A stretch of 64,000 bases of DNA, from positions 138,549 through 202,548 of the forward strand of contig NIVC01000578.1 of assembly GCA_002269645.1 (NCBI GenBank), given 5' to 3'. Shown piece after piece: positions 5,865-64,000 of the stretch. Origin of the DNA: Macrostomum lignano (lineage: Eukaryota). The position numbers were made by a program, and so were the translations under genes. The notes under the pieces were generated by a model. It was given only the letters and a program-made list of their open reading frames with translations. It searched no databases and was not told the DNA's origin. How positions within the stretch are numbered: position 1 is the stretch's first letter; every line of letters begins with the position of its first letter.

Positions 5865-6612
5865 GCAGGGAGTAGGCGGTGAGTAGGCAGTGAGTAGGCA
5901 GGGAGTAGGCAGTGAGTAGGCAGGGAGTAGGGCAGTGAGTAGGCAGTGAGTAGGCAGGGAGTAGGCAGTGAGTAGGGCAGGGAGTAGGCAGTGAGTAGGC
6001 AGTGAGTAGGGCAGGGAGTAGGCAGTGAGTAGGGCAGGGAGTAGGCAGTGAGTAGGGCAGGGAGTAGGCGGTGAGTAGGCAGTGAGTAGGCAGGGAGTAG
6101 GCAGTGAGTAGGCAGGGAGTAGGGCAGTGAGTAGGCAGTGAGTAGGCAGGGAGTAGGCAGTGAGTAGGGCAGGGAGTAGGCAGTGAGTAGGCAGTGAGTA
6201 GGGCAGGGAGTAGGCAGTGAGTAGGGCAGGGAGTAGGCAGTGAGTAGGGCAGGGAGTAGGCAGTGAGTAGGCAGTGAGTAGGGCAGGGAGTAGGCAGTGA
6301 GTAGGGCAGGGAGTAGGCAGTGAGTAGGGCAGGGAGTAGGCAGTGAGTAGGGCAGGGAGTAGGCAGGGAGTAGGCAGTGAGTAGGCAGTGAGTAGGGCAG
6401 GGAGTAGGCGGTGATAGGCAGTGAGTAGGCAGTGAGTAGGCAGTGAGTAGGCAGGGAGTAGACAGTGAGTAGGCAGTGAGTAGGGCAGGGAGTAGGCGGT
6501 GATAGGCAGTGAGTAGGCAGTGAGTAGGCAGGGAGTAGGCGGTGAGTAGGCAGTGAGTAGGCAGTGAGTAGGCAGGGAGTAGGCGGTGAGTAGGCAGTGA
6601 GTAGGCAGTGAT
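5865..6612. repeat. Minisatellite of 11-12 bp units (GAGTAGGCAGT / GAGTAGGGCAGG)
   Basis: Dense tandem array of two variant units. Confidence 0.95.
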
Positions 6613-13775: not shown

Positions 13776-22476
<8,701 letters not shown>

Positions 22477-32800: not shown

Positions 32801-33498
32801 GTTCCTCCGCCCCTTCTCCTTTTTATCCGCCCCTTCTCCTGTTTACCCGCTGCTTCACCTGTTCATCCGCCCCTTCTCCTGTTTATCCGCTGCTTCACCT
32901 GTTCCTCGCCCCCTTCTCCTGTTTATCCGCTGCTTCACCTGTTCCTCGGCCCCTTCTCCTGTTTATCCACCCTTCTGTTTATCCGCCCCTTCTCCTTTTC
33001 ATCCGCCCCTTCTTTTCATCCGCCCCTTCTCCTGTTTATCCGCCCCTTCTCCTTTTCATCCGCCCCTTTTTTTCATCCGCCCCTTCTCCTGTTTATCCGC
33101 CCCTTCTCCTATTCATCCGCCCCTTCTGGTTATCCGCCCCTTCTCCTCCTTATCCGCCCCTTTTCCCGTTCATCCGTCCCTTTCGCCCTTTCGCCATTGA
33201 GCCTCCCAGTCCATCTCCGCCGCTCCGCCCCGCCGCAGGGTGCGGCCACTGCAAGCGGGCCAAGCCGGAGTTCACCAAGGCGGCAGCCGAGCTGGCGGCC
33301 TCCGCGCCCAAGACGGCGCTGGCGGCGGTGGACTGCACCAGCGGGGAGAACTCGGCGCTGTGCCAGGCGGAGGGCGTAAGCGGCTACCCCACCATCAAGC
33401 ACTATTACTTCGGCAAGCGGGCCACCGACTATGCTGGCGGCAGGGAGGCGGCCGAGTTCGTCAAGTACATGACCAGCGAGGACAAAGTGGAGCTGTGA
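23822..33498 (+). CDS. PDIA5: Protein disulfide-isomerase A5 (PDIR) orthologue, 16 exons, 500 aa
   Basis: Phase-consistent exons: 23822-23887 (signal peptide MLAQYLLTCFLIFSLGLIAAEP), 25282-25378, 25453-25540, 25753-25818, 25896-25941, 26020-26112, 27501-27561, 27653-27717, 28657-28748, 28825-28890, 28992-29128, 29678-29827, 31397-31409, 31906-31971, 32064-32200, 33239-33498; total 1503 nt. N-terminal non-catalytic domain (DLKELKRIVKSHNNVLL, HYKDGKFNVNYDR, FLEDPTGDVPWDEEP), three WCGHC thioredoxin domains and C-terminal KVEL give the b-a-a-a layout of PDIA5. Confidence 0.93.
26115..27068. repeat. 57 bp (55 bp variant) intronic minisatellite
   Basis: About 17 copies of GTGGACAGGAGGCAGAGTAGCTGTTCACCTGGCCTGTCTCATGCAGAGTTTGTTCAC, beginning at the exon-6 donor. 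Confidence 0.97.
27074..27396 (+). mobile_element. tRNA-derived SINE with a CORE-like central domain and (TTA)n tail
   Basis: A box AGCCCAGTGGTTAGAGCG; B box GGGAGTTCGATTCCC; CORE-like GTCCTTGAGCAAGACACTTAACTC...CCCAGCTGTAAAATGGGT; ATTATTATTATATTAT tail; imperfect flanking repeat TCACGTGGACAC / TCACGTGAACAC. Confidence 0.85.
27930..28440. repeat. 29 bp intronic minisatellite (GAATGAATTCCCTTGGGATTCCCCTCTGA)
   Basis: About 17 copies. Confidence 0.95.
29945..31270. repeat. 24 bp intronic minisatellite (CCCACAGCTGAGAATCCCGAATAT) with 21-26 bp variants
   Basis: About 55 copies in intron 12 of PDIA5. Confidence 0.97.
32310..33190. repeat. ~40 bp pyrimidine-rich intronic minisatellite (CCGCTGCTTCACCTGTTCCTCCGCCCCTTCTCCTGTTTAT)
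   Basis: About 22 copies, decaying toward the acceptor at 33238. Confidence 0.93.
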
Positions 33499-33629: not shown

Positions 33630-35175
33630 CTGAGATTTCCCTGGGTCCATTCTTAGACTTCCCCGGATTCACCCTGAGATTTCTCTGGGTCCATTCTTAG
33701 GCTTCCCCGGATTCCCCTGAGATTTCCCTGGGTCCATTCTTAGGCTTCCCCGGATTCCCCTGAGATTTCCCTGGGTCCATTCTTAGGCTTCCCCGGATTC
33801 CCCTGAGATTTCCCTGGGTCCATTCTTAGACTTCCCCGGATTCACCCTGAGATTTCTCTGGGTCCATTCTTAGGCTTCCCCGGATTCCCCTGAGATTTCC
33901 CTGGGTCCATTCTTAGGCTTCCCCGGATTCCCCTGAGATTTCCCTGGGTCCATTCTTAGACTTCCCCGGATTCACCCTGAGATTTCTCTGGGTCCATTCT
34001 TAGACTTCCCCGGATTCCCCTGAGATTTCTCTGGATTCGCCCTAAGATTTCCCTGGATATTCCCGGAGATTTCCCTGGATTTACCCGGAGATTTCCCTGA
34101 ATTCACCCGGAAATTTCCCTGGATTCACCCTGAGATTTCCCTGAATTCACCCCGAGATTTTCCGGGATTCCCCCTGAGATTTCCCTGAATTCACCCCGAG
34201 ATTTTCCGGGATTCCCCCTGAGATTTCCCTGAATTCACCCTAAGATTTCCTTGGATTTACGGTGAGATTTCCTTGGATTAACCCGGAGTTTTCTCTGAAT
34301 TCCCCCTGAGATTTCCTTGGATTCCCCCTGAGATTTCCTTTGATTAACCGAAATTTCTCTGGATTCACCTTAAGATTTCCTTGGATTTACTCGGAGATTT
34401 CTGTGGATTCACCCGGAGATTTCTCTGGATTCACCCAGAGATTTCCCTGGATTCACCTCAAGATTTCTCTGGATTTACCCTGAGATTTCCTTGGATTAAC
34501 CCTAATATTTCTCTGGATTCACCCTAAGATTTCCTTGGATTTACCCGGAGATTTCTCTGGATTCACCCGGAGATTTCTCTGGATTCACCCGGAGATTTCC
34601 CTGGATTCACCCTGAGATTTCCCTGAATTCACCCCGAGATTTTCCGGGATTCCCCCTGAGATTTCCCTGAATTCACCCCGAGATTTTCCGGGATTCCCCC
34701 TGAGATTTCCCTGAATTCACCCTAAGATTTCCTTGGATTTACGGTGAGATTTCCTTGGATTAACCCGGAGATTTCTCTGAATTCCCCCTGAGATTTCCTT
34801 GGATTCCCCCTGAGATTTCCTTTGATTAACCGAAATTTCTCTGGATTCACCTTAAGATTTCCTTGGATTTACTCGGAGATTTCTGTGGATTCACCCGGAG
34901 ATTTCTCTGGATTCACCCAGAGATTTCCCTGGATTCACCTCAAGATTTCTCTGGATTTACCCTGAGATTTCCTTGGATTAACCCTAATATTTCTCTGGAT
35001 TCACCCTAAGATTTCCTTGGATTTACCCGGAGATTTCTCTGGATTCACCCGGAGATTTCTCTGGATTCACCCGGAGATTTCTCTGGATTCACCCGGAGAT
35101 TTCTGTGGATTCACCCGGAGATTTCCCTGGATTCACCCCGAGATTTCTCTGGATTCACCCCGAGATTTCCCAGAG
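33630..35175. repeat. Compound satellite (42 bp, then ~21 bp GGATTCACCCGGAGATTTCTCT units) containing a ~482 bp higher-order duplication
   Basis: The rare variant GATTTACGGTGAG recurs with GGTGAG at 34261 and 34743, with the surrounding variant order preserved. Confidence 0.9.
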
Positions 35176-36670: not shown

Positions 36671-37574
36671 AGGAGCCATGCAGATTTGCAGTGTGCACAG
36701 CCGAAGCTGTACGCTAATCCTGCCCGCATGGCAGCGCCACCGGTTAGTTAACCCGGAATCAGCTGCCGAACGAATACCGATCGATTAGCGCCGAATGGTT
36801 AATCGCGGTGCCAAGCAAAAGTTACATTTTAAAGAAATAAATTTTATATTTTAAAGCCGAACAGAAAACACCTGCGGCCGTAATGCATGCAGTTTATGCT
36901 TTTTCTCTGAAGCAGGCATTGCTTGGGGAGCCGTTTCTGAGGAATGCCCTGGGCCGGATCGGGGACAGCGCCGGGTCTGCGGCAGCGGGGAAGGGGGTGG
37001 CGGCGCAGATCACACGCGGAGCTGTTTGAGTCGGGGATCGAGGCAGGTGGCAGCGGAGACTCCTCCCTACTGCTGCACTGGTAGCCGTGATTGGAGCAGG
37101 GACTCAGCGCAGGTGGAACTCCTGGCCCGCACTGCCCCCGAGTTGATCTTTCTGGGGATAAATTGGCGAGCTCAGCCGAGCTGGGATCGGAGTCCGTGTT
37201 CTCATTGGGAAGATCGGCCTGAGGATCCCATAAGATCCCATTCGGCTTGGCTTCCGGGGTAAGTCGCCACCTTTCCCGCCTCCCAGCCGGTCATAAGTAC
37301 TTGTGCCGCAGACACCACACTGCATGTGCTGCCCTGTGCCTGCGTTTGCAAGTTCTTAAAACTGCGGGAGACTGCGCGCCTGCCGATGGCTGTCAGGATA
37401 TTTTCCCAATTTTTTGTGGGCGCTTTTTGGTGCCAAGCAGAGTCCGTTTACCAACTGCATCACCACCTCCGAACTTCACATTCCCCAAACTCACATTCCC
37501 CAAACTCACATTCCCCAAACTCCACATTCCCCAAACTCCACATTCCCCCAAAACTCACATTCCCCAAACTCTTA

Positions 37575-38518
37575 CAGAAGGGGGCGCCAGCTACAGAAGG
37601 GGCGCCAGCTACAGAAGGGGCGCCAGCTACAGAAGGGGCGCCAGCTACAGAGGGGGCGCCAGCTACAGAAGGGGCGCCAGCTACAGAGGGGGCTCCAGCT
37701 ACAGAAGGGGCGCCAGCTACAGAGGGGACTCCAGCTACAGAAGGGGCTCCAGCTACAGAAGGGGCGCCAGCTACAGAAGGGGCTCCAGCTACAGAAGGGA
37801 CGCCAGCTACAGAGGGGGCTCCAGCTACAGAGGGGGCTCCAGCTACAGAAGGGGCTCCAGCTACAGAAGGGGCGCCAGCTACAGAAGGGGCGCCAGCTAC
37901 AGAAGGGGCGCCAGCTACAGAGGGGACTCCAGCTACAGAAGGGGCGCCAGCTACAGAGTGTGGTGCTGGAGCGCTGAGCTCTAGGCACTGCAGTGACTAA
38001 CTAACTAGTTATCATGTACGTGCACCGGCAACATGCACTTTCTCTCTTGCTCTCTTTGGCCTGTCTGGCTCTACCCCTTAGATTTCATGTACGTAGTATT
38101 TGTCATCACGTGACCCCTTTCGTTATTGATCTATCAACCCTCGCTCATGTTATCATTAAATAGGCTGTTTGCTAAGTGAAATACATCTTGCAATTTTGCC
38201 ATCTACACGGCACGACACAGGAAAGGCGCCAGCTACAGAGGGGACGCCAGCTACAGAGGGGACACCGGCTACAGAGGGGACACCGGCTACAGAGGGGGCG
38301 CCAGCTACAGAGGGGACACTGGCTACGGAGGGGGCGCCAGCTACAGAGGGGACACCGGCTACGGAGGGGGCGCCAGCTACAGAGGGGACACCGGCTACGG
38401 AGGGGGCGCCAGCTACATAGGGGACGCCAGCTACAGAGGGGACACCGGCTACAGAGGGGGCGCCAGCTACAGAGGGGGCGCCAGCTACAGAGGGGGCGCC
38501 AGCTACAGAGGGGGCGCC
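37575..38518. repeat. Two arrays of one 18 bp unit (GCGCCAGCTACAGAGGGG): 37575-37957 and 38222-38518
   Basis: Same unit on both sides of a ~265 bp unique spacer; preceded by a 15 bp CACATTCCCCAAACT array (37475-37570). Confidence 0.95.
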
Positions 38519-39040
38519 CCAACGACCCGGCATTTAGCTTTTTCGGGAGCTGTCAGTATACAATGTCCAGCTCCTAAGCGGATTAGCTGTGTCTTGCCCC
38601 GAACTAAAAGTACATGAAAATAAGCAACGAAGTTCCATTTAGCCTTAAATGCGCCCAATCTCGCGTGGCGTTGCCACAAGAGATCACTGCTGCATGGCAG
38701 TTTGAAATCCAGGATATGCATCCGGGTTTTTTACTAGCAGGTGCTTTCGTTTGCTTCTGATGCTACGCATAAAATCTGTAGAAGATGCAAAAATTATTGA
38801 GGAACCCGCTGAAACTATCTGTGCTACTTTTGTTAGTAGCATATGGCTAAAAATCTAGAAAAAAACCTAGGATCAAGGATCGTCGTATGGGTTCATTTGT
38901 TTGTACTTTAACTTAAACTGAAGCGTGCATGCACATTGTCAGTGTTCAGAAAGGTGTTTGGTCTCGAAGGTACAACATTTGAACTGTTATTACTGAAACT
39001 GACTATGCTTAAATGCTATGCTATGCTATCATCAGGTCTT

Positions 39041-39980
39041 CTAGCCGCGGACAAAGAACTTCCCGCCCTGAACGCCGACCAGCTGCTGAGGCAGAACCGG
39101 TGTTGTGATTCAATGTACTGGCCCGTACTCTAGCTCTCTCTCTCCCTCTGCCAAGACCTATTTTATTGATTTATTTATTATTGAAGTTTATTTATTTACC
39201 CAGCCTGTCTGTGATTTCGAACCTCTGATTATGGTTGGCCCTCTCTCCCCGCGCCCTCTCATTGGCTGTCTCTGTCATCTGTAGCTCTTGTTTCCTACCC
39301 CCATTTGCGTTCTGCGTGGCTGCAGCCAATCCCCTCTCGCTCTCTCTGCCCCACCCCGCCGTTTCTCTTACCCTGCACCTTTAACCCCACCCCATTTGTG
39401 CTGGCTTGTATTTATTGGCCTGCGCGCCGCCCTTCCGTCTCCCGCGAGTTGTCTCCCCCCTTTCCGATTCGCTTCTGCTCACTACCCTCTCAACTCCTGC
39501 TATTCCAAGCCCAATATAGCGCCTAATATAACTCGTGCTTACTACCGGAACGTCCAGAGCGCCCGAGTGCCGAAACTGCGCAACTGCAAGTGTCACCTGT
39601 CTTATTTCTTTTGGGGTTCAATGCTTAGGATCTTGTCACCAGGTCCTGTGCGTTCGCTGCGACCCTGGTTGCCGGCCTGCAGCCTGCGCGTCAGTGCGAC
39701 AGCGGGTTGGCAAGCAGCAGGACTGGGTGCTGAGTCTTCCTGCTCGTATAGAGCGCGAGACGAAGCCGGCTGGTCCGTCTCGGGACACAACACCGGCAAG
39801 TTCAGGTGTCCAGATAGCAGGTGCCCAGGTGGAACAGGGCAGCCTTGCAGCTCGCGTCGCAACCCAGCAGGCAGTCGATGGGGCTTCCAGCCGGCTGCAC
39901 GGTGCGGTACTGGTAGAACGGCCCGCCGGAGGAGGTCGGGTTTATGTAGACGCGGGGAGCTGCGACGAAGTTGTTTCCAG
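39041..39980 (-). pseudogene. Inverted partial copy (exon 2 only) of the WSC-domain gene, interrupted by a solo LTR
   Basis: Reverse complement matches exon 2 of the + gene (GNNFVAAPRVYINPTSSGGPFYQYRTVQPAGSPIDCLLGCDASCKAALFHLGTCYL ... PQQLVGVQGGKFFVRG*). The acceptor is retained at 39981-39982. No WSC exon is found on the minus strand in the spacer. Confidence 0.85.
39101..39792. mobile_element. Solo LTR (692 bp), Ty3/Gypsy-like termini
   Basis: Termini TGTTGTG...CACAACA; 4 bp TSD CCGG at 39097-39100 and 39793-39796; the intact paralogue has a single CCGG at the equivalent site; internal CCAAT boxes and minus-strand AATAAA. Confidence 0.85.
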
Positions 39981-40514
39981 CTGGAATGAGCAATGAGCCA
40001 GTTCGCTCAGAAATCTCCAAATAAAGAAATCGTTGAAGAATTTTCATGCGCCATGCAAACCAATATGGCGGCTCTAAACTCAACTCCTCACTTCTCGCGT
40101 TTATTGATCGCAAGACAGCTCACTCCTACAGTGTTGGAGCGCCTTCTCCTACTCTCCACCGCTCCTCCTTGGATTGCCAGAGGAAAAGCTGCCGTGGATG
40201 GAAACAAGCGACTTAAAACCGGGGACTGTTGCACTCCCTGTCAATAAGTCTCTTCCATTAAGGTTTGATGGTCTATCTCGGCTTCCAATTGTTTGATTTT
40301 TTCTCTCAAAGCTACTGTAGCAGCTCCCGGCTTTTATCTTCCACCCACGCTCCCGCAGGCGCTCGCTTGAGAGTGCAGTGCCGTTCCGCAGCATCCCCAT
40401 GCGGCTCAAAGATTCTTCAACATAACTTTCCAGAATGAGTTTAAAAAGGAGTCAAGCAGAGACAGCAGCTGCTGCGATCAAGTCCGGCTTACTTACTTCA
40501 AAAGCCGTCAGAAA

Positions 40515-41312
40515 ATGTACCTCGCAGGCCCTCTGCTGATGCTTCTGTGCGCTCGGCTCTGCTTGGCTGCGGAATTCGACTTCGTCGGCTGCTACAGGGA
40601 CAACACAGATGATGCCAGGGACCTCGTCGGACTGGACGGCATGTCCTCCATCGGGCCCTACACGGTGATCACAGCAAAAAATTGCGTGATCCGGAACGAC
40701 ATGACGCTGCAGCTGTGCAGCCAGATCTGCGAGCTCGGCAACTTCAAGTACTTCGGTGCGCAATACAGGAAGGAGTGCTTCTGCGGAAACTCGTACGGCA
40801 GTCAGGGCGCCGCTCCCGAGAGCGACTGCAACATGAACTGCGCTGGCAACGCTAGCCAGATCTGCGGCTCTGGAGGCCGAAATTCGGTTTACCTGCAGGT
40901 TAACCACCGTCCCAGTGAGCAGCGGATTTCTCGCAATTTTTGTGGCTGAGGGATTTGATAGACTAACTGACCCTCTATGAGACTACTGACACTGCCCGAT
41001 GACATTTCACACTTTACATCACACTGACTTTTCAAACATTGATAATCAGCTGAACTGAACTGCATTTTGCTCATTGCAGTCGGCAACAAGTTCGTCGAAG
41101 CTCCCCGAGTCTACCTGAACCCGACCTCCTCCGGCGGGCCCTTCTACCGCACCTTGCAGCCGGCTAGAAGCCTCATCGACTGCCTGCTGGGTTGCGACGC
41201 GAGCTGCCAGGCTACCCTGTTCCACCAGGGTACCTGCTACCTGCTGAAATTGCCGGCTCTGCCGCAGCAGCTGGTCGGCGTTCAGGACGGAAAGTTCTTT
41301 GTCCGTGGCTAG
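40515..41312 (+). CDS. Secreted WSC-domain protein with a C-terminal Cys-containing PAN/apple-like module, 210 aa, 2 exons
   Basis: Signal peptide MYLAGPLLMLLCARLCLA; WSC motif FVGCYRD...MTLQLCSQIC...YFGAQYRKECFCGN...CNMNCAGNASQICG..RNSVY. Exons 40515-40914 and 41080-41312 join in phase 1. The PAN-like call is tentative. Confidence 0.85.
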
Positions 41313-41467
41313 AAGACCTGATGCTTCAGCTCGTACTTGCGCTGCGATCAACTTAATGGCGCTTTCTGTTAATCCTTACTTACTTACTTACTACTGACGG
41401 GGGGCGCAGGCGCCGCGAATAGGCCGCGAGGCCCCTATCGCAACCCCAAGGTAAAAGAGCACAAGGA

Positions 41468-46346
<4,879 letters not shown>

Positions 46347-47396
46347 TTATCCCAGGATTGCTCCCAGGCGAGGCTCCGGCAGGCCCCCGGTCCACACTCT
46401 GCAAGATCAGGGGGCGGGAGGCCGGCTGCGGGCTTGGGACACAGGCGCCAGGTCGAGTTGACAGCCGACGCCCGAGCCCTCCCCCACAAGAGCGGCCCTC
46501 GAGAACCCGTGTGGTACCAGTTGCAACTAAGGGCTGTCGATGGGTAGTTGGCGCTTAGCCAGCAGCCAACTACTTAGCAGCCACCTGCCCCGCAAAAAAG
46601 CAGCAGGGGGGATCCGTCCCCCACCAGCAGACCAAGACGAGGAAGCTAGCCGCTTCCACGCCAGGCCAGAACGAAAAGGAGGGGGAAGAGCCTCCTCGAA
46701 AAACGAAAAGCTGGCGGATGTCACAGAGTCCCTCGGTTTAAGTTGCCGTTTGCCCCCCTCTGTTAATCCTTGGGTAAATCCCTTAATCTGTGCTTTTTCA
46801 GTTCTCTTAAAAACTTTGGCTTGTTTCTAATTTAACAAAATCCTTTATGCCAGATCCACTTTAAGTTTTTTTAGTTTCAGTAATAACAGTTCGAATGTTG
46901 TACCTTCGAAACCAAACACCTTTGTGAGCACTGACTATGTGCAGGTACGCTTCAGTTCAAGTTGCAATTAAAGTGAAAAAGAATAGGAAACCGAAACTAA
47001 AAGACTATTGATTTTTCTAGGAACTGGGTTTGAACTTTTTGGATCTTTTCGCAACCCCAGCAAAATAAATATACGGGTCTCGGCTTCTCAGCCACTCTCT
47101 CCAGCATTGACAAAATGCGCCTTGCTTGTCGTCTTTGAATTTGTACATGTACGTGGCAGCGAGTTTCTCGAGCCTGAAAGTCGCTGCCTGCGCCGCAGAG
47201 CGGCTTGGAGAAAAATCTGACAATATTTTATGGCGTGAGCGTCTAGCTAATTAAAAACTAAGAACAAAAAATTGTAAGTGCACCTCGGTCCTTCAGTTAT
47301 TTTACGCATCTGTGGGGCAAGCACCTGGACCAGACTAACGCGTAAATTCATTGCTTTTCAGTAAAACTATTTGTAAGAGTACTGATATTCTTTAAT

Positions 47397-47602
47397 GCTC
47401 GCTAAGGCGTATTCAGCATGCCAGTGAAGTATGAGACAGACCAGGCCTATGATCTAAGCCCTAAGGTCTGCGATGCTTCACGCCTGCCCCCATCTTCAGC
47501 AGGCAAAGGCTGGCGGGAGGTCTGTACCCTCTATAGTCAACCCAGGGGTACTCGTCCCCGCGAGTGTTCATGGCAGACCCTCGGGCTGCTGGACAGACTG
47601 GG
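47397..47602 (+). ncRNA. HDV/CPEB3-like self-cleaving ribozyme candidate 1
   Basis: P1 GCUCGC 47397-402 / GCGAGU 47560-565 (G1.U); P2 CCCAG 47541-545 / CUGGG 47598-602; P3 GGG/CCC; L3 UACUCGU; P1.1 A47550-U47567 and C47551-G47566; P4 GCAG.CC/GG.CUGC; predicted catalytic C47594 in C-A-G-A. Folded by hand only. Confidence 0.75.
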
Positions 47603-48118
47603 CTCCGACGCTGGGTACCCATCCAGAGGCTCCGGCCGAATTTGGGTATGCAGGTCTGGCTCGCCAGTCCGCAGGCCGTGGTACTGCTTAACGTACCCTC
47701 TAATACCTAAGGTGTTGACCGAGCCTAGTATTTTATTATTTTCCCCATTATTTTTCATTTATTAATTAATCATTTTTTATCATAATTAATCTTTCATAAC
47801 AAAAATATTAAAAATATTCATCGATTACTTGATGCAAACTATGTTGCGCAAACTGCTGTAAAGCAAAGCGTTTGCTTTACATTGTGTGTGAGTTGTTACG
47901 TACTATTTTATTGCATCCTGCTGTAACACATTCATCACAGAAGCAGTTATTGTAACCACCGATCTGCTTACTTTCTACAAAGAACGCTCCAGCGAATATT
48001 GACATATCTGAATAAGTTCATAGATAATTGCAGACTTTGCTCAGTTTAGAGAGACATCATCTGTTCACATCTTAAGAACTGCTATGTTTGTAACAATATC
48101 CAATACTGCACATTTTCT

Positions 48119-48775
48119 ATGAACATGAATCTGCCAGACCCCGGCCTTCAAGGTCTTCACAGTGCTTCTGCCAGGCCCTCGGGACCGTCAAAGGCCCTTC
48201 TGGTGAAGGACTTTATCAACCGTGATGGCGAGGAGCCCGCCTTTGGCGAGAAGCCCAGAGTCCGGACCGAGCAGATCTCTGCGGGTCAGTGGGTAGCAGG
48301 CAGCAACCGAATCCTGCTGAAACTCCTCGACGAGGGCTCCCTGGTCACCGTCAAGAATGGCGCGGTGGATCTTAAACAGCTGAAGTCCTACGTTCGCTAC
48401 TGTGTTCAGTTCGTCGAGTTTATGCACCAGGGTTTCAGTCAGGCCGCCCTCAACTGTTACGATGAAGACTTCAGGATCCTGCAAAATCAGTCGAGCGGCA
48501 GCTGGGAGCGGGAGTCGCTGCAGCTGCTATCCAAGCACATTCTGGCACCAAAGTCAAGTCAGGGCGGCAACGCGATCCCCCAGCGCACCAACTTCAAGTC
48601 CAGTAGGCCAAAGCAGCAGCAGTCCGGCTTCATCGGCCCGATCGATCCTGAGGGGCGGCAGCTGTGCGTGAAGTTCAACCGCAACAGCTGCCTACGGCGC
48701 GACTGCAAGTTCAGACACGTCTGCTCCGCCTGCTACGAGGCGCACCCGCGCCAGTTCTGCACTTCAAAAAACTAG
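48119..48775 (+). CDS. DIRS/Ngaro-type gag-like ORF with a C-terminal zinc finger (probably 5'-truncated)
   Basis: ALLVKDFI...QWVAGSNRIL...YDEDFRILQ and CVKFNRNSCLRRDCKFRHVCSACYEAHPRQFC; overlaps the RT ORF, as is usual in DIRS-order elements. Confidence 0.75.
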   Translation: MNMNLPDPGLQGLHSASARPSGPSKALLVKDFINRDGEEPAFGEKPRVRTEQISAGQWVAGSNRILLKLLDEGSLVTVKNGAVDLKQLKSYVRYCVQFVEFMHQGFSQAALNCYDEDFRILQNQSSGSWERESLQLLSKHILAPKSSQGGNAIPQRTNFKSSRPKQQQSGFIGPIDPEGRQLCVKFNRNSCLRRDCKFRHVCSACYEAHPRQFCTSKN

Positions 48776-50375
48776 ATCGCGGCTGGCCGGGGAGCTCAAG
48801 TGGCAGCGCAGCTGCCCCGGCGGAAGCCAAAGTCGAACCCCCGCTGCCCCCCGGCTGGCCCTTTCCCAAGCCCCTCGAGTCCGTTGCTTTCTCATCCGAC
48901 CTCGCCACAGCCGCCTGGGAAGCTGAGCTGACTGACGACCCTGACCGCGAATTCCTGCTGAATGGCATCCGCAACGGTTTCCAACTCACCTGCCCTGACC
49001 CGTCAGAAAGAGCTTCAACTGTGTCAGAAACCCAGAACTACCTATCAGTCAACAGTGACCGGCAGCTGGTCGAGCAGCAGGTGCGGGAGGAAGTCCTAAA
49101 TGGCCGCTACGTTCAAGTCAGTGACAAGCCGGAGGTTATCAGTGCTCTTGGCGCCATTCCGAAGAGCAACAACAAGATTCGACTGATCCACGACTGCTCT
49201 AATCCTCCGGGTCTCTCCTTAAACAGCCAATTTTCTTCCAACTACCGAATCAAGTTCGAGACCGTCAGTAACTTCACCGCTAAGCTGCAACCCGGTTGGT
49301 TCATGGCCAAAGTCGACCTCGCCAATGCCTACCAGAGTGTCGGCATTAGCCCGCAGGATTTTCGGCTCACCGGTTTAAAGTGGAAATTTAGCAACCAGCG
49401 AAGCTCCTCGTACATCTGCGACACACGGCTCTCCTTCGGCGCTGCCGCCTCCGTTGAAATTTTTCACCGCCTCAGCCAGGCCGTCAAGCGCATGATGCAG
49501 AGACGGGGCTTCAACGATATCGGCAGTTATCTCGACGACTTCGCCGTAGCAGCCCCCAGCAAGGACGACTGCCAGCTCGCTCTCGACACCCTGCTCAATC
49601 TGCTGCGGAAGCTTGGCTTCTCCATCAACTGGAGCAAGGTGGTGGCGCCGTGCATCAGACTGGTTTACCTGGGCGTCCTCATCGACACCGTCAGCGGCCT
49701 GCTGGAGCTTCCGAAGGACAAGCTCGACGCCACCAAGTCTCAGCTGCAGTCCGCGCTCTCTCGAAAGCGCATCACCAAGCGCCAACTCCAATAGCTCTGT
49801 GACCGCATCAACTGGGTCTGCCAGGTGGTCCGCATCGGGAGATGCTTCCTGAGACCACTCCTGCTCGAGCTCGGCAACCTGAAGCAGCAGCGGCATAAAC
49901 TGCGCGTGCACAATGATCTCCGCGAGATCCTTAGCTGGTGGGACGCCTGCCTGGCCGCCTCCCCCAGCTGCAAAATCTGGTGTTTCACCGGGCCCAGCTG
50001 GGCCATCGAGTCCGACGCGTCCAACTGGGGCGGCTGCGGCATCATCTGCGGCTCAGACACCACCAGCTGGCTCATCATGGACTGGCACCGCGAGTCGACC
50101 GAGATCGAGCCGCTGCACATCAACTTCAAGGAAATTCTTGCTCCTGTGCTCACGGCCCTGCATTTCCAGCAGCAGCTGCAACCAGGCAGCCAGCTCGTCA
50201 TCTACTCTGACAGCACCACCGCAGTCGGCGCCATCAACAAGGGCTCGTCGCCAAATCGGCTCGTCAACTCGGCTCTGCAACAGCTGATGCTCCTCGCTGC
50301 GCACCGCGACCTCTCCGTCCAGGCCTTCCACGTCCCCGGGACATTCCAGATCTTCGCTGCTAGTGGCAGCCGAGC
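48664..50375 (+). pseudogene. DIRS/Ngaro-type reverse transcriptase - RNase H with an in-frame TAG (49792-49794); no tyrosine recombinase present
   Basis: WEAELTDDPDREFLLNGIRNGF, KIRLIHDCS, WFMAKVDLANAY, RLSFGAAAS, YLDDF, YLGVLID; after the stop ESDASNWGG, HINFKE, DSTTAVGAINKG, FHVPG...SR. Homology ends at the second ribozyme/LINE start. Confidence 0.85.
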
Positions 50376-50581
50376 GCATGCATTGGTGGGTTCAGCACGC
50401 CTGTGTAGCATGAGACAGACTAGGCTTATGAGCTAAGGTCTGCGATCCTACACACCTGCACCCCCTCTATTCTGGTGCAGGAATGGCAGGAGAACTCTCT
50501 CCAAGCTGACTCACAAGCCGACCCAGGGGTTCACGTCCCGCATGTGTTCAAGGCAGCTCTAGGGCTGCTGGACTGACTGGG
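50376..50581 (+). ncRNA. HDV/CPEB3-like self-cleaving ribozyme candidate 2, at the 5' end of LINE 2
   Basis: P1 GCAUGC 50376-381 / GCAUGU 50540-545 (G1.U); P2 CCCAG 50522-526 / CUGGG 50577-581; P3 GGG/CCC; L3 UUCACGU; P1.1 C50532-G50546 plus U.U; P4 GCAGCU/GGCUGC; predicted catalytic C50573 in C-U-G-A. Folded by hand only. Confidence 0.78.
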
Positions 50582-52865
50582 CTCCGGCGGCGGCAAACCC
50601 ACCCGTAGTCTTGACCTCGGTCTTGGCTGTGTTGGGTACGGGCTCCGCCCGGAAGTGAACCTGTGCGTATCAGGTACCTCTGGCCACGGCTCTGAGGAAC
50701 AGGTATCCCCCTCTGACCTTAACAGGGTATGCGGCCAGTCCGCAGGCTCCGGGGACAGCCTCTTGTCCCCCCAGGGCCCAGTGTAGTACCGCGCTGATGG
50801 TCCTTTGGTTCGGCCTCTGGTTTCTCCAAGCCGGGCTCTTAGCTGGGGACTTTCTCGGTTGCTAGCGGTCGGGCCGGTAAGGGCTTAAGCCACCCCCCGG
50901 TCGCTATCTTTTGGCTGGATGTTGGGTTTGCGGTTACGGCCCAGCAGCTTCTCACCTTTAGTCCCCATTCGCTTTTCACGACTCATGGAGTATTCATTTA
51001 CCTCCGACACGTCCGAGGCTGCTGGAGCACCAACCGAGGTTGGTACCGCGGCCCAGCCGGACATTTGCAACACCGGAACCCCCTGTGCCTCCCAGTCAGC
51101 CCCTGCCGCCGCTCAGGACAATACCAAAGCGGCTGGACAACAGGACAGCGGACCTCAGACCTCTAAGAAGAAGGCCCGTAGCATTGCTCGCTACAAAGCT
51201 TTTCTCCAGCGCAAAGCGGAGGAGCGGAGAAGAGCGAAAGCCTCCCCTCCGGCCGCCTCCGAGGAGGGTGCCGGTAACTCTGCGAATCCCGCGGAGGAGC
51301 CGACATCCGACAAGGGGGCGGACCCCGCGCGCCGGTCAGAAGCGTCAGGTGCCGCCGAAGCTCCTGGTGCGGCTGGCCCCTCCCGTGGCGGGACCTCTGC
51401 CCGTGTGGAAACTCCCACGGCCGCGGAGGGATCCAAAGCAGGGGGTGCTGGCCAAACCGCTAAGCCGAAGCGCACCTATGCGGCTATGGCCAAGAGGCAG
51501 CCGGTGCTGATCATTCAAGGCCAGGAGACGCCTCTTACGGCCGAAAAGCTCGATCAAATCTGGCGCAGGTTGGACTCCCACCTGGTCAAGATGGCCTTGA
51601 GCGGTACCGCTATTCAAGTCCAAAAGACGAAAGTCGAGGACCAAGCCCTTCATATCCAGCCCGCCGACAGACAGTCTGGGCAGCAGCTCCTCGAATGCTG
51701 AAAGCCTTCGACTGGGGTACGGAGCTGGAGAACCTGTTCATCTACAGGGAGGACAAGCGACCCCGGACACACCGGCACCGTGCCTGGATTCCGGCTCGCA
51801 GCTGCATCACCAAGGCCGACGAGCTGCGTCACCTGCTAGTGGCTTCCAACCCGGAGCTACCGGCCAATGGTGTCGTAGTTCACGAGACCATCTCCAAGCC
51901 GGGCGGAGACGGTTTCACGGCTATTCTTGGACTGTCGGATAGCTGGATGCTCCGCTACCCGGACATGTCCATCATCTCTGTCGGACTGTTGCAGATTCAG
52001 CTCTTTAGCTTCGAGTCTGACGCCACCCGCCCACCGCCCCCAGAGAAACGTAAGCGGGCAGTCGGGGGCTCTGCCGGGCGGAAACGCCCAGGAAAAGAAG
52101 CTCCCGGCCGTCACGACCCCTCCGAGGACGTGGACCCTGTCAGAGGGAAAGCCGCGAAAGCTGCAGCAACAGGCGGACGTGGAAAGGGCCGGAAACCCGC
52201 CCGGAACACTATCCGCTCTGGTCTGACTCAGCGCGCGAAGCAGCTGCTGGACACCGCCAAGGTCAACAACCGCAGCAACCCCCAGACCAGTGTCACAACT
52301 GCCCACCCCTGGAAAACCGGGCCGAGAGCGAGAATGCCGCCCTGGTGGTGGCCCCGCCCTCGACCATGGAGACCATCCGGGAGGAGCCCATGGAACTGGA
52401 GCCTGAAGCCAACAGCGAGGCAGAAGAGGCAGCCCTCCTGCACAACTCGCCCTGAGCCGACAGGAAGCTGCGCGGACCACTCGTGGAATCCCCGGAGTGG
52501 ACATCCTGCATCGCGGCCTCTACCAACCTGATGCAGTTTCAAACTTCGTGATTCTACTTCAGGAGCCCTGGACGAAGAAAGGTAAGATTCTGAATATTCC
52601 TGCTGGTTTTGACTTTTTCAGGACCCTCAAAACCCCAGAGCAGCTATTTTCGTATCTACCCACCTCAAAGCTTGGCACAGACCGGACCTCTCTGACAGAG
52701 ACCTCTGTGTCATCATCGCCTCGATTTATATCCCTGGCGATGGCCCCGCGGTTCCACCCAACCTCACTTCCCTCGTGGACTACTGCTCTGACCGCAGGTT
52801 CGAGCTGTTGGTGGCGGGCGACGCCAACGCCCACAACACACACTGGGGCAGTAACACCTCCAACA
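50376..52865 (+). mobile_element. 3'-truncated, frameshifted LOA-like LINE (5' UTR, ORF1 and start of the endonuclease)
   Basis: ORF1 from ATG 50985 with a frameshift at ~51695 (RTYAAMA; HRHRAWIP...LLVASNPELP), homologous to ORF1 of the minus-strand LINE; APE fragments ILLQEPW, PRAAI, ASIY, AGDANAHNTHWGS; ends abruptly near 52865. Confidence 0.82.
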
Positions 52866-55140: not shown

Positions 55141-57703
55141 TCATCGTTCATTATTCAGTTTAGATACGTTTTTACTCACTAGGGAAAAAGAAGATGAATG
55201 GCTGTGTCTTTGCACGGCGCTGCCAGAAGCGGGACTTTGAGTCGCTGCCACCAAAGACCGTCTTTGCACGGCGCTGCCAGAAGCGGGACTTTGAGTCGCT
55301 GCCACCAGAGATCGTCTTTGCACGGCGCTGCCAGAAGCGGGGCTTGGAGTCGCTGCCACCAGAGACTGTCTTTTTACGGCGCTGCCAGAAGCGGGGCTTG
55401 GAGTCGCTGCCACCAGAGACTGTCTTTGTACGGCGCTGCCAGAAGCGGGACTTTGAGTCGCTGCCACCAGAGACTGTCTTTGTACGGCGCTGCCAGAAGC
55501 GGGGCTTGGAGTCGCTGCCACCAGAGACTGTCTTTGTACGGCGCTGCCAGAAGCGGGGCTTGGAGTCGCTGCCACCAGAGACTGTCTTTGTACGGCGCTG
55601 CCAGAAGCGGGACTTTGAGTCGCTGCCACCAGAGACTGTCTTTGTACGGCGCTGCCAGAAGCGGGGCTTGGAGTCGCTGCCACCAGAGACTGTCTTTGTA
55701 CGGCGCTGTCAGAAGCGGGGCTTTGAGTCTGGACTCCGGAAAGCAGCTGGCTTCCTGTGCGATGCGACCGCCCCTTTAATCGGTCACCGCCATGCTTTAG
55801 CTGCTGTCTGCAAGTATTTCTTACAGATTGTTCAGAGGGCCTGCCGGCTTCAGCGGTCGCGCCATAGATGAATGTGATTGCTTCTGTTAGGAAAAAAGTT
55901 GAAAGTTACTATGAATAGCATGCACTGTGCTCGACTAATTTCTTGATATTTAGCTCTAAAAGTCTCATTGAACGTTGATTAAGTAGACTTACTTTGGAAA
56001 TGGCTGAGCAGAGTGCTCTGAAATCCAAGCTGCGCATCAGTAAGGTTGGTCGCAACTCCAGCAGCAACAGCTCGGCTTCGCATGTCTGACCCGATTAAAT
56101 TAATAACCGCCTGCATCTCTTTCGACAAGCTCTCGTTAAGCATTGCCATTAAAGCATCGGACCACTTGTCTCGCTTGCATGAACGTAGCAGGCTCTTCTG
56201 TTTAGATTTTTACAGGTGAGAATACTTATAGATTATTATTTCAGTGATAGTACTAGTGCGCTTTGAGTAGTAGTTAGAGCATTTCTTCTAATGAAAAGAA
56301 AATAAAAAACTCTGTCATGAACTTACCAAAGTAGAAATATGTTCATTTGGACTGGAAGCGAATTGCACATATTTTTCCCAGGAGTTGATCGGCCAGAATG
56401 AAGGCTCAGAATTATCAGTTGGAATGTCAGCGCCAACAGGTTCCAAAAAGCGTAGCACGCTCTGCACTTCAGTGCGCATTGCGGTGATTTGTTTGGTCAA
56501 ACTATTTTCTAATGCTTTCAATTCATTCTTGCGCATAGTAAGTTCGCGTAGGGCATATAAGGACAGAAACTTGATGCCTCTTGGACTTTCCAGCTCAAAG
56601 CTAACACCGGCTTGGATCTGCTCTTCTAGTTTTCTAAGAAAGCCAGAACCAAAATTAAAAGATGAAATGGTGGGAGGCGACTTAGGAATCGTCGATCGAT
56701 CATCTGCTACGAACTCAGCTTCTATTTCAGCTTCCGCCTCAGCTTCCACCTCAGCTCCCATCTCAGCTTCCACCTCAGCTTCCGCCTCAGCTTCCGCCTC
56801 AGCTCCCATCTCAGCTTCCACCTCAGCTCCGATCTCAGCTTCCACCTCATCTTCCGCTTCAGCTTCCGCCTCAGCTTCCACTTCAGCTTCCGCCTCAGCT
56901 TCCACTTCAGCTTCCGCCTCAGCTTCCGCCTCAGCTTCCATATCGGCGTCTACGCCAGCTTCTGCTTCATCATCACTAATAGGAGGCATTGGCGCTAACT
57001 GTGCAATCGTAGGCGGATGTTGTTTAGGCAGCAAAGCTGGAGGTTGCAAACAGCGGCTGCTCTTATCTTCGAAGATTGCCTCGGAATCGGTGGCTGAGCC
57101 GTCTGACAGATTCTGTTTGGGATGGTTACGGCATGAGAAATTATCAAGTTAATGTCAGTTTTAAAGATTATTTTCACATTTAATTTCTTCCCTTTTCTTA
57201 AAAAATAGTTTAAAAGGTAAAACGGAGAAAACAAAGTTCTCGATAAAAATTATATGGGCTGTGCTTAATTTTACCTTAGTCTGGTAATGCCTTCGTGCTT
57301 TCTTCATGTCACGCTCCTGAAAGACTCTGGGTTGAACCAACTCGAGAATTCGGTTCAGTCGGGTCTTTTTGGCCACCAATTCACGCACAAAGCGGAAGCT
57401 CCCAGGCTCTAGGTTGTTGCTTAGTATTACCTTTAAATTAATGAGAAAATATGAGCGTACAAATATTAGATCGATTCAAGAATTTTAACATTTCAATCGT
57501 TGGGATCGGTTGCTTACCTGAATAATTAGAGCAGAGTAAAAACAGCCTTCATACAAGGCTTCACACTTCCACTTCTCAGTGGAGTCCCTCTTTTCTAACC
57601 ATTCCTCTTCCTTAAGGTTTTGAAAGCCTTCAGGAAGCTTCACTTCGCTTTCCGAGACCTCAACAATTTGACGGTCGTCTTTAAAGATCACTAAAAACTT
57701 CAT
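55141..57703 (-). CDS. Five-exon transposon-associated protein (691 aa), DUF4806-like accessory protein
   Basis: Phase-consistent GT-AG exons: 57703-57518, 57430-57275, 57112-56327, 56197-55993, 55883-55141 (2076 nt). Acidic EAEAEV tract, coiled coil, [12 protein letters not shown] motif and ten in-frame 18-aa repeats. The domain call is from recalled motif resemblance only. Confidence 0.7.
55200..55730. repeat. 54 bp coding minisatellite (SLVAAT[PQ][11 protein letters not shown] on the minus strand)
   Basis: About 10 copies in frame within the last exon of the partner gene. Confidence 0.93.
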
Positions 57704-58067: not shown

Positions 58068-60095
58068 ATGACAAGGCAATTGAGGCGACAAGCAAATAAG
58101 GATTTGCTGGGCTTGTTCATGGAAGGAGAACAAGAAGCTTTGGAAGACATCGCACTGCAAGAGAAAAAAAGAAAAGTATTCGAAGCAGATGATTCTGGGA
58201 GAGTCGCCGGTTTCATCGCTTCGGAGTCCTCTGTAGCAGAAGTCAATGAAGGTACGGATCCAGATCTTGACAACGACAATGGCAGCTATCCTGATTTTGA
58301 CGAGTTCGCGCGAGTTTGCAGCGATGAAGATGAGGAGATTGACAAGAAAGAGGATGACCGCTCTTTAGAAGATAAAATATTCGCCTTGCTGGTAGTCTAC
58401 TTTTCTTGTTTCAACCTAAGTCGTGGATCTAAAAAATTCCTTGTTGATGGTCTAAGAGACATAGGCTTGCCTGCGCCGAAGTCTGTCAACTCTATTGAGG
58501 CCGTCATCAATGCTGGCGATCCAACGGAAAAATTGGAGCCCATGGGAAAAGGCCATTTTCGCTACATTTCGATTCTGAAAAATCTAGAACTAATGTTTCG
58601 CAAAAACCAGCTGCACATGAAGCCAGAATATCTACAACACGATAGTGAAACTGAGAAGGTTTACAAAATTGAAGCCATCGTTAATTTTGACGGCTTGCCT
58701 TTGTACCGAGCAAGCCACTTCGGTCTTTGGCCCATACTTATGTCTATTCCCAGCATATTCAGCAGACCTTTTCCAGTAGCCGTATGGGCTGGTTGTGGCA
58801 AGCCACCTCTGAATGATTATCTTCGACAATTTTGCGACGAGGCTAAACGTTTTCTTACGGGTCCAATAAAAATTATCGAAAATTTAAGCATCAGCTTCTC
58901 GACTATCCGATTTGTTTGCGATGCGCCTGCTCGAGCCTGGGTCTCAGTAACTCAAGGGCACATGTCGTACGTCGGTTGCATGTACTGCAGGGCTACTGGA
59001 CCTTATACCGACAACAGAGTAACATTTTCAACGAGCGTCGGGGAGTCTCGTAGCAGCCAACAATACCGAGAGGGAAAGGAGTCTAACCAGGAAAATAAAA
59101 AAATCGCTCTATCGCCCCTTCTAAATTTGCCTAACATTAGTTTTGTCGATGCTTTTCCCCCTGACTACCAGCATGCCGTATGCCTTGGAGTCACAAGGAA
59201 GCTATTTTACCTATTTTTCGACAAATCTAATGGCAAGAAGTGTCTCGTCTATCCCGGTCCGATGAGCCTATTGGGCGACCGAATTACTATGGCTGCCGGT
59301 TGGACACCTTCAAACTTTCAACGAAGACCCCGGAAAATCGACTTGGAACTGAAGCACATGAAGGCTACTGAATTCAGACAGTACTTGCTGTACCTAGGAC
59401 CTGTCCTCTTCAAAGGCATTTTAAATGAAGAAAGGTATAACCACTTTCTTTACCTCCATTTCGCCATTTACGCATACTCCAACGAAAGGTACTCCAAGTG
59501 GTGGACGCAGGCAAAAACTTGCATTGAAGTTTTTGTTGAACGGGCTGCCCACCTTTACGGCCAGAAGTTTATAAGTTTCAATCTTCACACTATTCTTCAT
59601 TTGGATGAGTTTGTCCGAAAGCTAGGCAGTTTAAACAACTTTTCGACTTTCCCTTTCGAAAACTTTCTTGGATCTGTAAAGCGCCGCGTAAAGGTGACAA
59701 GGCACATGGCAGCGCATTCAGTTAAGCAGGTGCTCAGAGTTCGCGATCTTCTGTTGAATGAGCAGCGAATTCCACCGTTGAAATTCAGCACAAAGCGAGG
59801 TGATAATTGTTGCATAATCGACAAAGTATGCGTCCTAATCGAAGCTGTAAGTGAAGCTAATCAAGTCACTGGCAGGATTTTACACCCAGTTGACAACATC
59901 TACGCCAACCCATATCCATCTTTGCGTCTGGGAATCGGCTTGTACAGGATGACATCTGGTGTTCTAACTGGCACACCTGAGCGAAAGTGCTGGATTTTGC
60001 CTGCGAATCTGCTTGCCAATCTTGCTGGAGCGGACAGGGATCCAGCAAGCCATTTTTTTGTCATTCCTCTGACAGGTGACTCCGAGGAGGCCTGA
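58068..60095 (+). CDS. CACTA/EnSpm-family (animal-type) DDE transposase, 675 aa, intact
   Basis: NFDGLPLY..SHFGLWPIL, RFVCDAPARAW...GH..Y.GC.YC, PPDYQHAVCLGV, KATEFRQYLLY.GPV, FISFNLH.ILHL, FSTFPFENFLG.VKR. Confidence 0.88.
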   Translation: MTRQLRRQANKDLLGLFMEGEQEALEDIALQEKKRKVFEADDSGRVAGFIASESSVAEVNEGTDPDLDNDNGSYPDFDEFARVCSDEDEEIDKKEDDRSLEDKIFALLVVYFSCFNLSRGSKKFLVDGLRDIGLPAPKSVNSIEAVINAGDPTEKLEPMGKGHFRYISILKNLELMFRKNQLHMKPEYLQHDSETEKVYKIEAIVNFDGLPLYRASHFGLWPILMSIPSIFSRPFPVAVWAGCGKPPLNDYLRQFCDEAKRFLTGPIKIIENLSISFSTIRFVCDAPARAWVSVTQGHMSYVGCMYCRATGPYTDNRVTFSTSVGESRSSQQYREGKESNQENKKIALSPLLNLPNISFVDAFPPDYQHAVCLGVTRKLFYLFFDKSNGKKCLVYPGPMSLLGDRITMAAGWTPSNFQRRPRKIDLELKHMKATEFRQYLLYLGPVLFKGILNEERYNHFLYLHFAIYAYSNERYSKWWTQAKTCIEVFVERAAHLYGQKFISFNLHTILHLDEFVRKLGSLNNFSTFPFENFLGSVKRRVKVTRHMAAHSVKQVLRVRDLLLNEQRIPPLKFSTKRGDNCCIIDKVCVLIEAVSEANQVTGRILHPVDNIYANPYPSLRLGIGLYRMTSGVLTGTPERKCWILPANLLANLAGADRDPASHFFVIPLTGDSEEA

Positions 60096-62640: not shown

Positions 62641-63038
62641 CGGGATTTCCCCTGTCCTAGTTGTATTTCTCTAAAATTCTGGAAGATAAATCGAGATTCT
62701 AGATAATAGCTGCATCTAAGATTAGTTTGTTTTGCTATCGCATTGTACCGTACAATTAATTATTGAAAATTTTAAACCTTTGCTGGCATACGCATATGTT
62801 ATCTTTGACCTTACCTGTTGTTTAATAGGTAAATTATTACTGTATGGAGGTACATGTAGATATAGGCATTTTGACTGTCAACTGTCCACCCCATACAAGC
62901 ATACGGCTTTCAAATAATTATGCAACCTTGTGCAAGGGTATGCCGCCTACTTACATGTAAAACTTTGAAATGAGTATTTATTTACGCCACTATCCAAGGG
63001 GGGGGCGCGGCCGCGGGAGACCGACAGCGGAGACCGCC

Positions 63039-63690
63039 ACAATTTGCCCGCCAGACAATTTGCCCGCCAGACAATTTGCCCGCCAGACAATTTGCCCGCC
63101 AGACAATTTGCCCGCCAGACAATTTGCCCGCCAGACAATTTGCCCGCCAGACAATTTGCCCGCCAGACAATTTGCCCGCCAGACAATTTGCCCGCCAGAC
63201 AATTTGCCCGCCAGACAATTTGCCCGCCAGACAATTTGCCCGCCAGACAATTTGCCCGCCAGACAATTTGCCCGCCAGACAATTTGCCCGCCAGACAATT
63301 TGCCCGCCAGACAATTTGCCCGCCAGACAATTTGCCCGCCAGACAATTTGCCCGCCAGACAATTTGCCCGCCAGACAATTTGCCCGCCAGACAATTTGCC
63401 CGCCAGACAATTTGCCCGCCAGACAATTTGCCCGCCAGACAATTTGCCCGCCAGACAATTTGCCCGCCAGACAATTTGCCCGCCAGACAATTTGCCCGCC
63501 AGACAATTTGCCCGCCAGACAATTTGCCCGCCAGACAATTTGCCCGCCAGACAATTTGCCCGCCAGACAATTTGCCCGCCAGACAATTTGCCCGCCAGAC
63601 AATTTGCCCGCCAGACAATTTGCCCGCCAGACAATTTGCCCGCCAGACAATTTGCCCGCCAGACAATTTGCCCGCCAGACAATTTGCCCC
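63039..63690. repeat. Perfect 16 bp tandem array (ACAATTTGCCCGCCAG), ~41 copies
   Basis: No variant units seen; all six frames stay open and give artefact ORFs. Confidence 0.98.
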
Positions 63691-64000
63691 TATTTCACCT
63701 TGAATAGAACGGCGATCAAATTGTGGCGGTCAAATGTACTCGTAGATGTAGTAGACCCGGCGGCCGCCCCCTTTGCCATGGCTGGACTTGCATATAAGGG
63801 GGGTAAATTTTGAGCTTACTTTGGCTTTTTAGACCAAAACAAAAATTTGGGAAAATCTGCCCCCACTACTTTAAAAATCCTGAATTGACCACCAAATCGG
63901 ACTCATCTAAATGAAAACTTAAGAATACAAGCAACATTGTACATGCGCTAGTGCTTAAGTAGTGGAGTATTAAAAAATATATTTTTTGTTGCGTTGATTT

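Follow-up and report, generated by a model that had tools for sequence, protein, structure and literature searches.

A predicted large HDV-like ribozyme at the 5′ end of a two-ORF LINE from the flatworm Macrostomum lignano

Introduction

In HDV-like ribozymes, helix P1 comprises 6-7 bp counted from the cleavage-site nucleotide, and G1 usually forms a G.U wobble. Work by Ruminski from 2011 reportedly places a ribozyme of this kind at the 5′ terminus of Baggins1, a LOA element. HDV-like ribozymes have been described at the 5′ ends of R2, R4/Dong, RTE, and L1Tc/ingi (PMC3774820, PMC4035085, PMC3185411), and Baggins1 is among the element sequences used in one of these studies (PMC3774820). The drz-Agam-2 family of Anopheles gambiae comprises large HDV-like ribozymes that carry a P1.2 peripheral domain (Webb et al. 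2016, PMC4908430), and a structured J1/2 domain of this type activates large HDV-like ribozymes (PMC4908430). For Schistosoma LINEs, twister variants have been described (PMC8501958). In full-text searches of the literature, we found no HDV-like ribozyme reported from Macrostomum or from any flatworm LINE other than R2.

Here, we analyzed 64,000 nt of M. lignano DNA (assembly GCA_002269645.1, contig NIVC01000578.1, positions 138,549 to 202,548 of the forward strand), referred to as the window herein and numbered from its first letter. We consider it very likely that the first ~213 nt of a two-ORF LINE with endonuclease, RT, and RNase H domains encode a large HDV-like self-cleaving ribozyme, with cleavage predicted from the fold. 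Like drz-Agam-2, this ribozyme has a nested double pseudoknot, a long, paired J1/2 with a closing helix that adjoins P1 and P2, short single-stranded linkers (4 and 2 nt), and a P2 longer than the usual ~7 bp, built here from a core of 5-6 bp, an internal loop, and 4 further bp. It differs from drz-Agam-2 in that J1/2 branches into several hairpins over 138-163 nt rather than forming a single P1.2 helix, in that no sequence similarity is detectable between the two, in its flatworm LINE host, and in that its cleavage is a prediction. As in R2, R4/Dong, RTE, and L1Tc/ingi, the ribozyme forms the very 5′ terminus of the element and precedes the first ORF, its predicted cut site equals the 5′ junction, and processing of a co-transcript is possible. 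The host belongs to another LINE lineage than those elements, with two ORFs, an APE-type endonuclease, RT, and RNase H, and comes from a free-living flatworm; in contrast to R2 it is not site-specific, and its ribozyme is about three times longer than the 77-nt L1TcRz.

Results

A nested double pseudoknot at the start of the LINE

An initial annotation of the window had proposed an HDV-like ribozyme at 50376-50581. Our helix table placed P1, P2, P3, L3, P1.1, P4, and the C-UGA segment at the same positions as that proposal, so its 5′ edge and core helices stand. The 3′ edge does not: after a 1 × 3 internal loop, P2 gains four more base pairs (50517-50520 with 50585-50588), and the ribozyme therefore extends to ~50588. 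The four bases UCAA, previously read as a free strand before P4, are better drawn within a P4 of 50548-50572, which leaves C50573 directly 3′ of P4. The features of this copy, all on the + strand, are as follows.

50376-50588, +: HDV-like ribozyme, copy 1 (w1), from the descriptor match, helix table, P2 extension, and covariation
50376-50381, +: 5′ strand of P1, GCAUGC, pairing with 50540-50545; the predicted cut is 5′ of G50376
50382-50516, +: J1/2 peripheral domain, from the architecture common to w1 and L001 (see below) and from RNAalifold
50517-50526, +: 5′ strand of P2, consisting of GCCG (50517-50520, partners 50585-50588, the extension), a bulged A, and the core CCCAG (50522-50526, partners 50577-50581)
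50527-50539, +: P3, GGG (50527-50529) with CCC (50537-50539), around L3 UUCACGU (50530-50536)
50540-50547, +: 3′ strand of P1, GCAUGU (50540-50545), and the P1.1 bases GU (50546-50547), which pair with C50532 and U50531 as C-G + U.U
50548-50572, +: P4 hairpin, present in three of three copies with differing sequence and length
50573-50576, +: J4/2, CUGA, with C50573 as the predicted catalytic cytosine
50577-50588, +: 3′ strand of P2, CUGGG (50577-50581), a CUC loop, and the extension CGGC (50585-50588)

P1 has 6 bp and opens with a G1.U pair. P4 begins with U-A and C-G pairs, followed by an AA/G internal loop and the helix GGCAGC/GCUGCU.

The fold is conserved in three diverged copies

Two further copies of this sequence were found. 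Copy 2 lies 3 kb upstream of copy 1 in the window and is ~70% identical to it over ~230 nt. Its homology to the LINE 5′ UTR (~330 nt) ends at ~47720-47730 and is followed by AT-rich, unrelated DNA.

47397-47609, +: HDV-like ribozyme, copy 2 (w2), from the descriptor scan, alignment, and helix table
47397-47402 with 47560-47565: P1 of copy 2
47541-47545 with 47598-47602: P2 of copy 2
47546-47548 with 47556-47558: P3 of copy 2
47594: predicted catalytic C of copy 2

The third copy is on a 6492-nt Logan contig, L001, which holds a full-length element with a 5′ UTR, ORF1, and a 1232-aa ORF2 containing endonuclease, RT, and RNase H domains. Its 5′ UTR aligns with that of copy 1 over the full length, up to the ORF1 ATG, and carries the same ribozyme fold at ~60% nucleotide identity. 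The order P1, J1/2, P2, P3, L3, P3′, P1′, P1.1, P4, J4/2, P2′ is kept in all three copies, which compare as follows.

P1: copy 1 GCAUGC/GCAUGU; copy 2 GCUCGC/GCGAGU; L001 GCCUGC/GCAGGC
P1 position 3: copy 1 A-U; copy 2 U-A; L001 C-G
P1 position 4: copy 1 U-A; copy 2 C-G; L001 U-A
P1.1: copy 1 C-G + U.U; copy 2 C-G + A-U; L001 U-A + C-G
L3: copy 1 UUCACGU; copy 2 UACUCGU; L001 UCUCCGU
J4/2: copy 1 CUGA; copy 2 CAGA; L001 CUGC

Several positions are constant. G1 is invariant; its P1 pair is a G.U wobble in copies 1 and 2 and G1-C in L001. The 3-bp P3 is GGG/CCC throughout, and the 7-nt L3 keeps U1 and G6 in three of three copies, the positions of the metal-site U...G pair (U20/G25 in HDV). The predicted catalytic cytosine (C50573, C47594, and C228 of L001) and the 3 nt after it fall directly between P4 and P2′ in each case. 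Around these fixed points the helices vary in a compensatory manner, as had been anticipated for P1, P1.1, and P2 in other family members: position 3 of P1, for instance, is A-U, U-A, or C-G, P1.1 still pairs although both of its strands change, and P2 with its extension shows C-G to U-A changes. The P2 core itself is short, at 5-6 bp.

To quantify the covariation we used a core sub-alignment of 59 columns that left out P4, the J1/2 interior, and three lineage-specific bases, since MAFFT misregistered P4 and P2′ of L001. Among these three sequences, from which the tested structure was also derived, 96.7% of the core pair cells held standard pairs, compared with 27-38% when the partners were slid by 1-3 columns. 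Changes on both sides were seen at 6 of the 20 core pairs, two of them in P1. The slid controls showed no such double change, and the observed values were reached in only 1-2 of 500 shuffles. An unconstrained RNAalifold run from G1 to P1′ returned the long-range P1 (two compensatory positions), P3, and the shared J1/2 hairpins, with 13 of 51 pairs compensatory. The single-sequence minimum free energy structure of L001 contains P1, P3, P4, and the J1/2 closing helix (z = -3.0), and the fold of copy 1 is not more stable than its shuffles (z = -1.4).

The L3 heptamer UUCACGU and the P1.1 with one Watson-Crick pair (C-G + U.U) of copy 1 form the arrangement of the mammalian CPEB3 ribozyme, in which P4 directly follows P1.1 as it does in copy 1. 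The label "CPEB3-like" is nevertheless not supported: this L3 is specific to copy 1, P1.1 consists of two Watson-Crick pairs in both homologues, the ribozyme sits in a retrotransposon rather than an intron and has a long J1/2, and there is no match to the Rfam CPEB3 model. Judged by its sequence, the LINE ribozyme is not a member of the CPEB3 family, with an unconserved L3 identity and no model match, and the resemblance of copy 1 is convergent within the constraint U-N-Y-N-C-G-U.

Conservation, and not the motif, separates the fold from chance

A motif this permissive could match by accident, since a long, free J1/2 allows a 6-nt P1 nearly anywhere. Indeed, a loose HDV descriptor, in which J1/2 could be any sequence of up to 220 nt, matched 14 sites in the window, about a dozen of them non-homologous, as against 5-9 per window in block-wise dinucleotide shuffles. 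A loose match is therefore not significant. A strict descriptor, which required U1 and G6 in L3, a C plus 3 nt before P2′, and an abutting P4, matched only two sites in the window, 50376 and its homologue 47397, and gave one match in eight shuffled windows. The absence of any matching Rfam model also fits a chance occurrence. Against this stand homologues at ~70% and ~60% identity that keep every helix with compensatory changes, slid-partner controls that stay at ~35% paired with no double changes, and a G1 that marks the homology boundary in independent copies. A chance match is thus exceedingly improbable, and we regard it as effectively refuted by the homology boundary, the RNAalifold compensation, and the slid-partner controls. 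By itself the motif is weak evidence and would be unconvincing genome-wide; it is the conservation and covariation that persuade.

Rfam was searched at several levels. An Rfam HDV or CPEB3 match to copy 1, proposed earlier as a check, was not obtained: no family matched in the whole window at the gathering score or in 50300-50700 at E ≤ 10, and none, CPEB3 included, matched the copy 1 core alone with 5′-truncated matches allowed. Positions 1-700 of L001 gave only chance matches. Because Rfam models are sequence-specific and this class is usually found by structure descriptors, the result counts against membership in those Rfam families and not against the fold class.

J1/2 is a structured domain with a near-invariant hairpin

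J1/2 measures 140 nt in copy 1, 138 nt in copy 2, and 163 nt in L001. Copy 1 and L001 share one layout: the linker next to P1 has 4 nt (AUUG or AAUG) and leads into a closing helix around three hairpins, and a 2-nt AA linker is then followed by a P2 with the 4-bp extension beyond the 1 × 3 internal loop. The closing helix has 6 bp in copy 1 (50386-50391 with 50509-50514) and 9 bp in L001. The closed, paired J1/2, short linkers, and extended P2 that distinguish the P1.2 type are accordingly found in copy 1 and L001 and not in copy 2, which has a degenerate or lost closing helix and lacks one pair of the P2 extension; copy 2 is probably a decayed relic. The long J1/2 is a conserved structured domain, not a weakness of the ribozyme call. 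By sequence and predicted structure, then, the element groups with the HDV-like fold class, with the 5′-terminal LINE ribozymes, and with the large P1.2-type subclass.

The central J1/2 hairpin, UAUGAGA..GAC.AGGC...CUAAGGUCU.CGAU, is near-invariant and conserved far above the rest of the UTR, and this holds across families whose ORF1 proteins are only ~53% identical. Such conservation hints at an additional, sequence-specific role. J1/2 could conceivably be a second functional module inside the ribozyme, beyond a "pinch" helix, a reading that we put forward as unlikely; it might serve as an internal promoter, as a docking site for proteins of the element itself that links 5′ processing with RNP assembly or translation, or as a regulated cleavage switch.

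G1 is the 5′ boundary of the LINE family

The ribozyme had been suggested to define the 5′ end of the LINE family, and three copies agree with this. Copies 1 and 2 are homologous from G1 onward and unrelated upstream of it, where 3 of 20 bases are identical (by eye, from the alignment) and the flanks are retroelement RNase H sequence for copy 1 and AT-rich DNA for copy 2. The Logan contig, independent of the window, starts exactly at the homologous G and at its 3′ end extends past the element into flanking DNA, so the pile-up of family 5′ ends at G1 that had been expected is seen in two window copies and in L001. The start of L001 could reflect a repeat boundary in the assembly graph or the 5′ end of an RNA; both readings support G1 as the first base, and a contig end is weaker evidence than a sequenced junction.

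The host LINE is a dead copy inserted in an older retroelement

The remaining features around copy 1, all on the + strand, are as follows.

48664-50373, +: older retroelement (RT, then RNase H) that hosts the copy 1 insertion
50589-50984, +: rest of the LINE 5′ UTR, ~62% identical to the L001 5′ UTR
50985-52285, +: LINE ORF1 with a frameshift near 51695, from tblastn with L001 ORF1
52548-52864, +: start of LINE ORF2, endonuclease residues ~32-150 only, from tblastn with L001 ORF2

The ORF1 ATG at 50985 lies 609 nt past G1, in agreement with the ~610 nt noted before. At 52864 the element ends, 3′-truncated, as judged by a change in sequence and a drop in G+C. With a frameshifted ORF1 and a truncated 3′ end, this element is dead, a fossil of the mechanism; despite this, all helices of copy 1 are intact.

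Upstream, the older retroelement, labelled DIRS in the initial annotation, matched only Pfam RVT_1 (2.7e-15) and, weakly, RNase_H (E 0.013, profile positions 33-121 of 141, cut at junction 50374/5). Its reading frame confirms that the HVPG...SR motif ends at 50373, just before G1. DIRS-type elements have internal and terminal repeats, and the copies at 47397 and 50376 bracket the RT-RNase H fragment, so the repeated sequence might be thought to belong to this retroelement, as terminal or split direct repeats, instead of to the LINE. L001, however, contains no retroelement of this kind, and there the sequence runs directly into the LINE 5′ UTR, ORF1, and ORF2. Copy 1 also stays collinear with the UTR of L001 up to the ORF1 ATG, and the RNase H domain is truncated at junction 50374/5. 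We give this reading almost no credence and consider it refuted by the structure of L001, which assigns the repeat to the LINE.

Both window copies (47397-47730, 330 nt, and 50376-52864, 2.5 kb) keep the 5′ end and are without the 3′ part. LINE insertions are usually truncated at the 5′ end, the opposite of what is seen here. Possible causes of the 3′ loss are later deletions, nested insertions, or something else. Alternatively, the short 5′-only copies could be a ribozyme-bearing non-autonomous derivative or reflect an unusual, 5′-retaining mode of insertion, and not be products of deletion.

Other repeats in the window

A second, apparently intact LINE occupies 41531-46208 on the - strand, with ORF1 at 45285-46208 (307 aa) and ORF2 at 41833-45285 (1150 aa); its ORF2 has endonuclease, RT, and RNase H domains and is 40% identical to L001 ORF2. 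The 5′ UTR of this LINE (46209-47100) showed no nucleotide similarity to the ribozyme-bearing UTR, and a relaxed descriptor gave only noisy, unconvincing HDV-like matches in it. A 104-nt inverted repeat (38910-39013 with 46860-46963, 88% complementary, 7.8 kb apart) brackets the region of the minus-strand LINE, and there are further inverted pairs (39030-39993 with 41067-41323); these may represent a DNA transposon or foldback structure.

Minisatellite arrays with periods of 9-57 nt pack the window, and many yield long, spurious ORFs on both strands. Examples are found at 745-3500, 4560-6500, 9518-10240, 16000-17560, 26033-28550, 30190-31360, 32251-33150, 33908-35000, 37449-38570, 55151-55837, 56655-57008, and 62879-63800. 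Two further ORFs, at 17407-22476 (-, 1689 aa) and 58068-60095 (+, 675 aa), are without a Pfam match and may be host genes or unclassified repeats.

Relatives of the element

Searches with ORF1 returned L001 and one M. lignano gene model only. The ORF1 protein encoded on L001, P0001, is 53% identical to the window ORF1 (searched with the frameshift-merged ORF1), and the ORF1 part of the M. lignano model P0002 is ~93% identical (195 of 210 aligned residues, counted manually). ORF1 of L001 is called from a GTG at position 548; the counterpart of the window ORF1 ATG lies at ~599, which makes the true L001 5′ UTR ~598 nt long. Exact-protein look-ups gave no record for the window ORF1 or for the intact minus-strand ORF2.

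The closest ORF2 relative was P0004, at 56%. Three distant ORF2 relatives (L002-L004, 34-37%) have long non-coding 5′ regions without a descriptor match or similarity, a result that says nothing either way on conservation of the ribozyme across the clade. In metagenomes, a DNA pattern built from the conserved J1/2 hairpin gave 0 matches and an ORF1 profile found no true relatives. A relaxed J1/2 pattern gave seven matches in GTDB genomes; all were bacterial, with similarity confined to the pattern, and were rejected.

Several M. lignano UniRef models (P0002, P0005, P0006, P0008, P0011, P0017, and P0034) combine LINE-matching stretches with unrelated host Pfam domains, namely LRR, peptidase S8, acyltransferase, and ankyrin. 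Their domain content suggests chimeric gene predictions into which fragments of the LINE have been drawn.

Discussion

We envision that the LINE would be transcribed within a longer read-through RNA, here perhaps from the same-orientation host retroelement, or alternatively from its own promoter with a start further upstream. The RNA would then fold, with the 138-163 nt J1/2 domain pinching P1 and P2 together, and C50573 in J4/2 would catalyze the cut immediately 5′ of G50376. The released LINE RNA, with G1 as its first base, would be the template for target-primed reverse transcription and probably also the messenger RNA. Since the released RNA would carry G1 first, we propose that every full-length insertion begins at G1. 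The scheme follows the mechanism already established for R2, R4, RTE, and L1Tc/ingi elements (PMC3774820, PMC3185411, PMC4035085). Catalysis, co-transcription, and any role in translation are steps that we infer from the fold and its position.

The same conserved structure might instead be a non-catalytic element of the 5′ UTR, with G1 as the transcription start and the structure acting as a DNA-level internal promoter, an IRES-like element for translation, or a site bound by proteins that the LINE itself encodes. The sequence conservation of the J1/2 hairpin suggests just such a sequence-specific reader, no Rfam ribozyme model matches, and the 77 nt of L1Tc are at once promoter and ribozyme (PMC3383444). 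Yet the covariation falls on precisely the helices that make up the HDV double pseudoknot, including the two pseudoknotted ones, P2 and P1.1, the covarying P1 uses the first six bases of the LINE, and the catalytic-site positions are all kept. The roles are furthermore not exclusive, and a second function in J1/2 would add to the ribozyme rather than replace it. A purely non-catalytic element is therefore improbable in our view, and a self-cleaving ribozyme remains the preferred reading of the LINE 5′ end.

The LINE ribozyme is a genuine but foreseeable further case of an established class; it will not surprise a specialist, and it leaves views on how HDV-like ribozymes work unchanged. With a J1/2 that is both branched and very large, it offers a natural system in which to examine the "pinch" model of activation. 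For annotation, G1 gives a nucleotide-exact 5′ boundary for this LINE family, and the element flags several M. lignano gene models, P0002 among them, as LINE-containing chimeras. Lastly, the group of retrotransposons in which an HDV-like ribozyme, here a predicted one, sets the element's own 5′ end gains a flatworm lineage and a LINE that has two ORFs and an RNase H domain.
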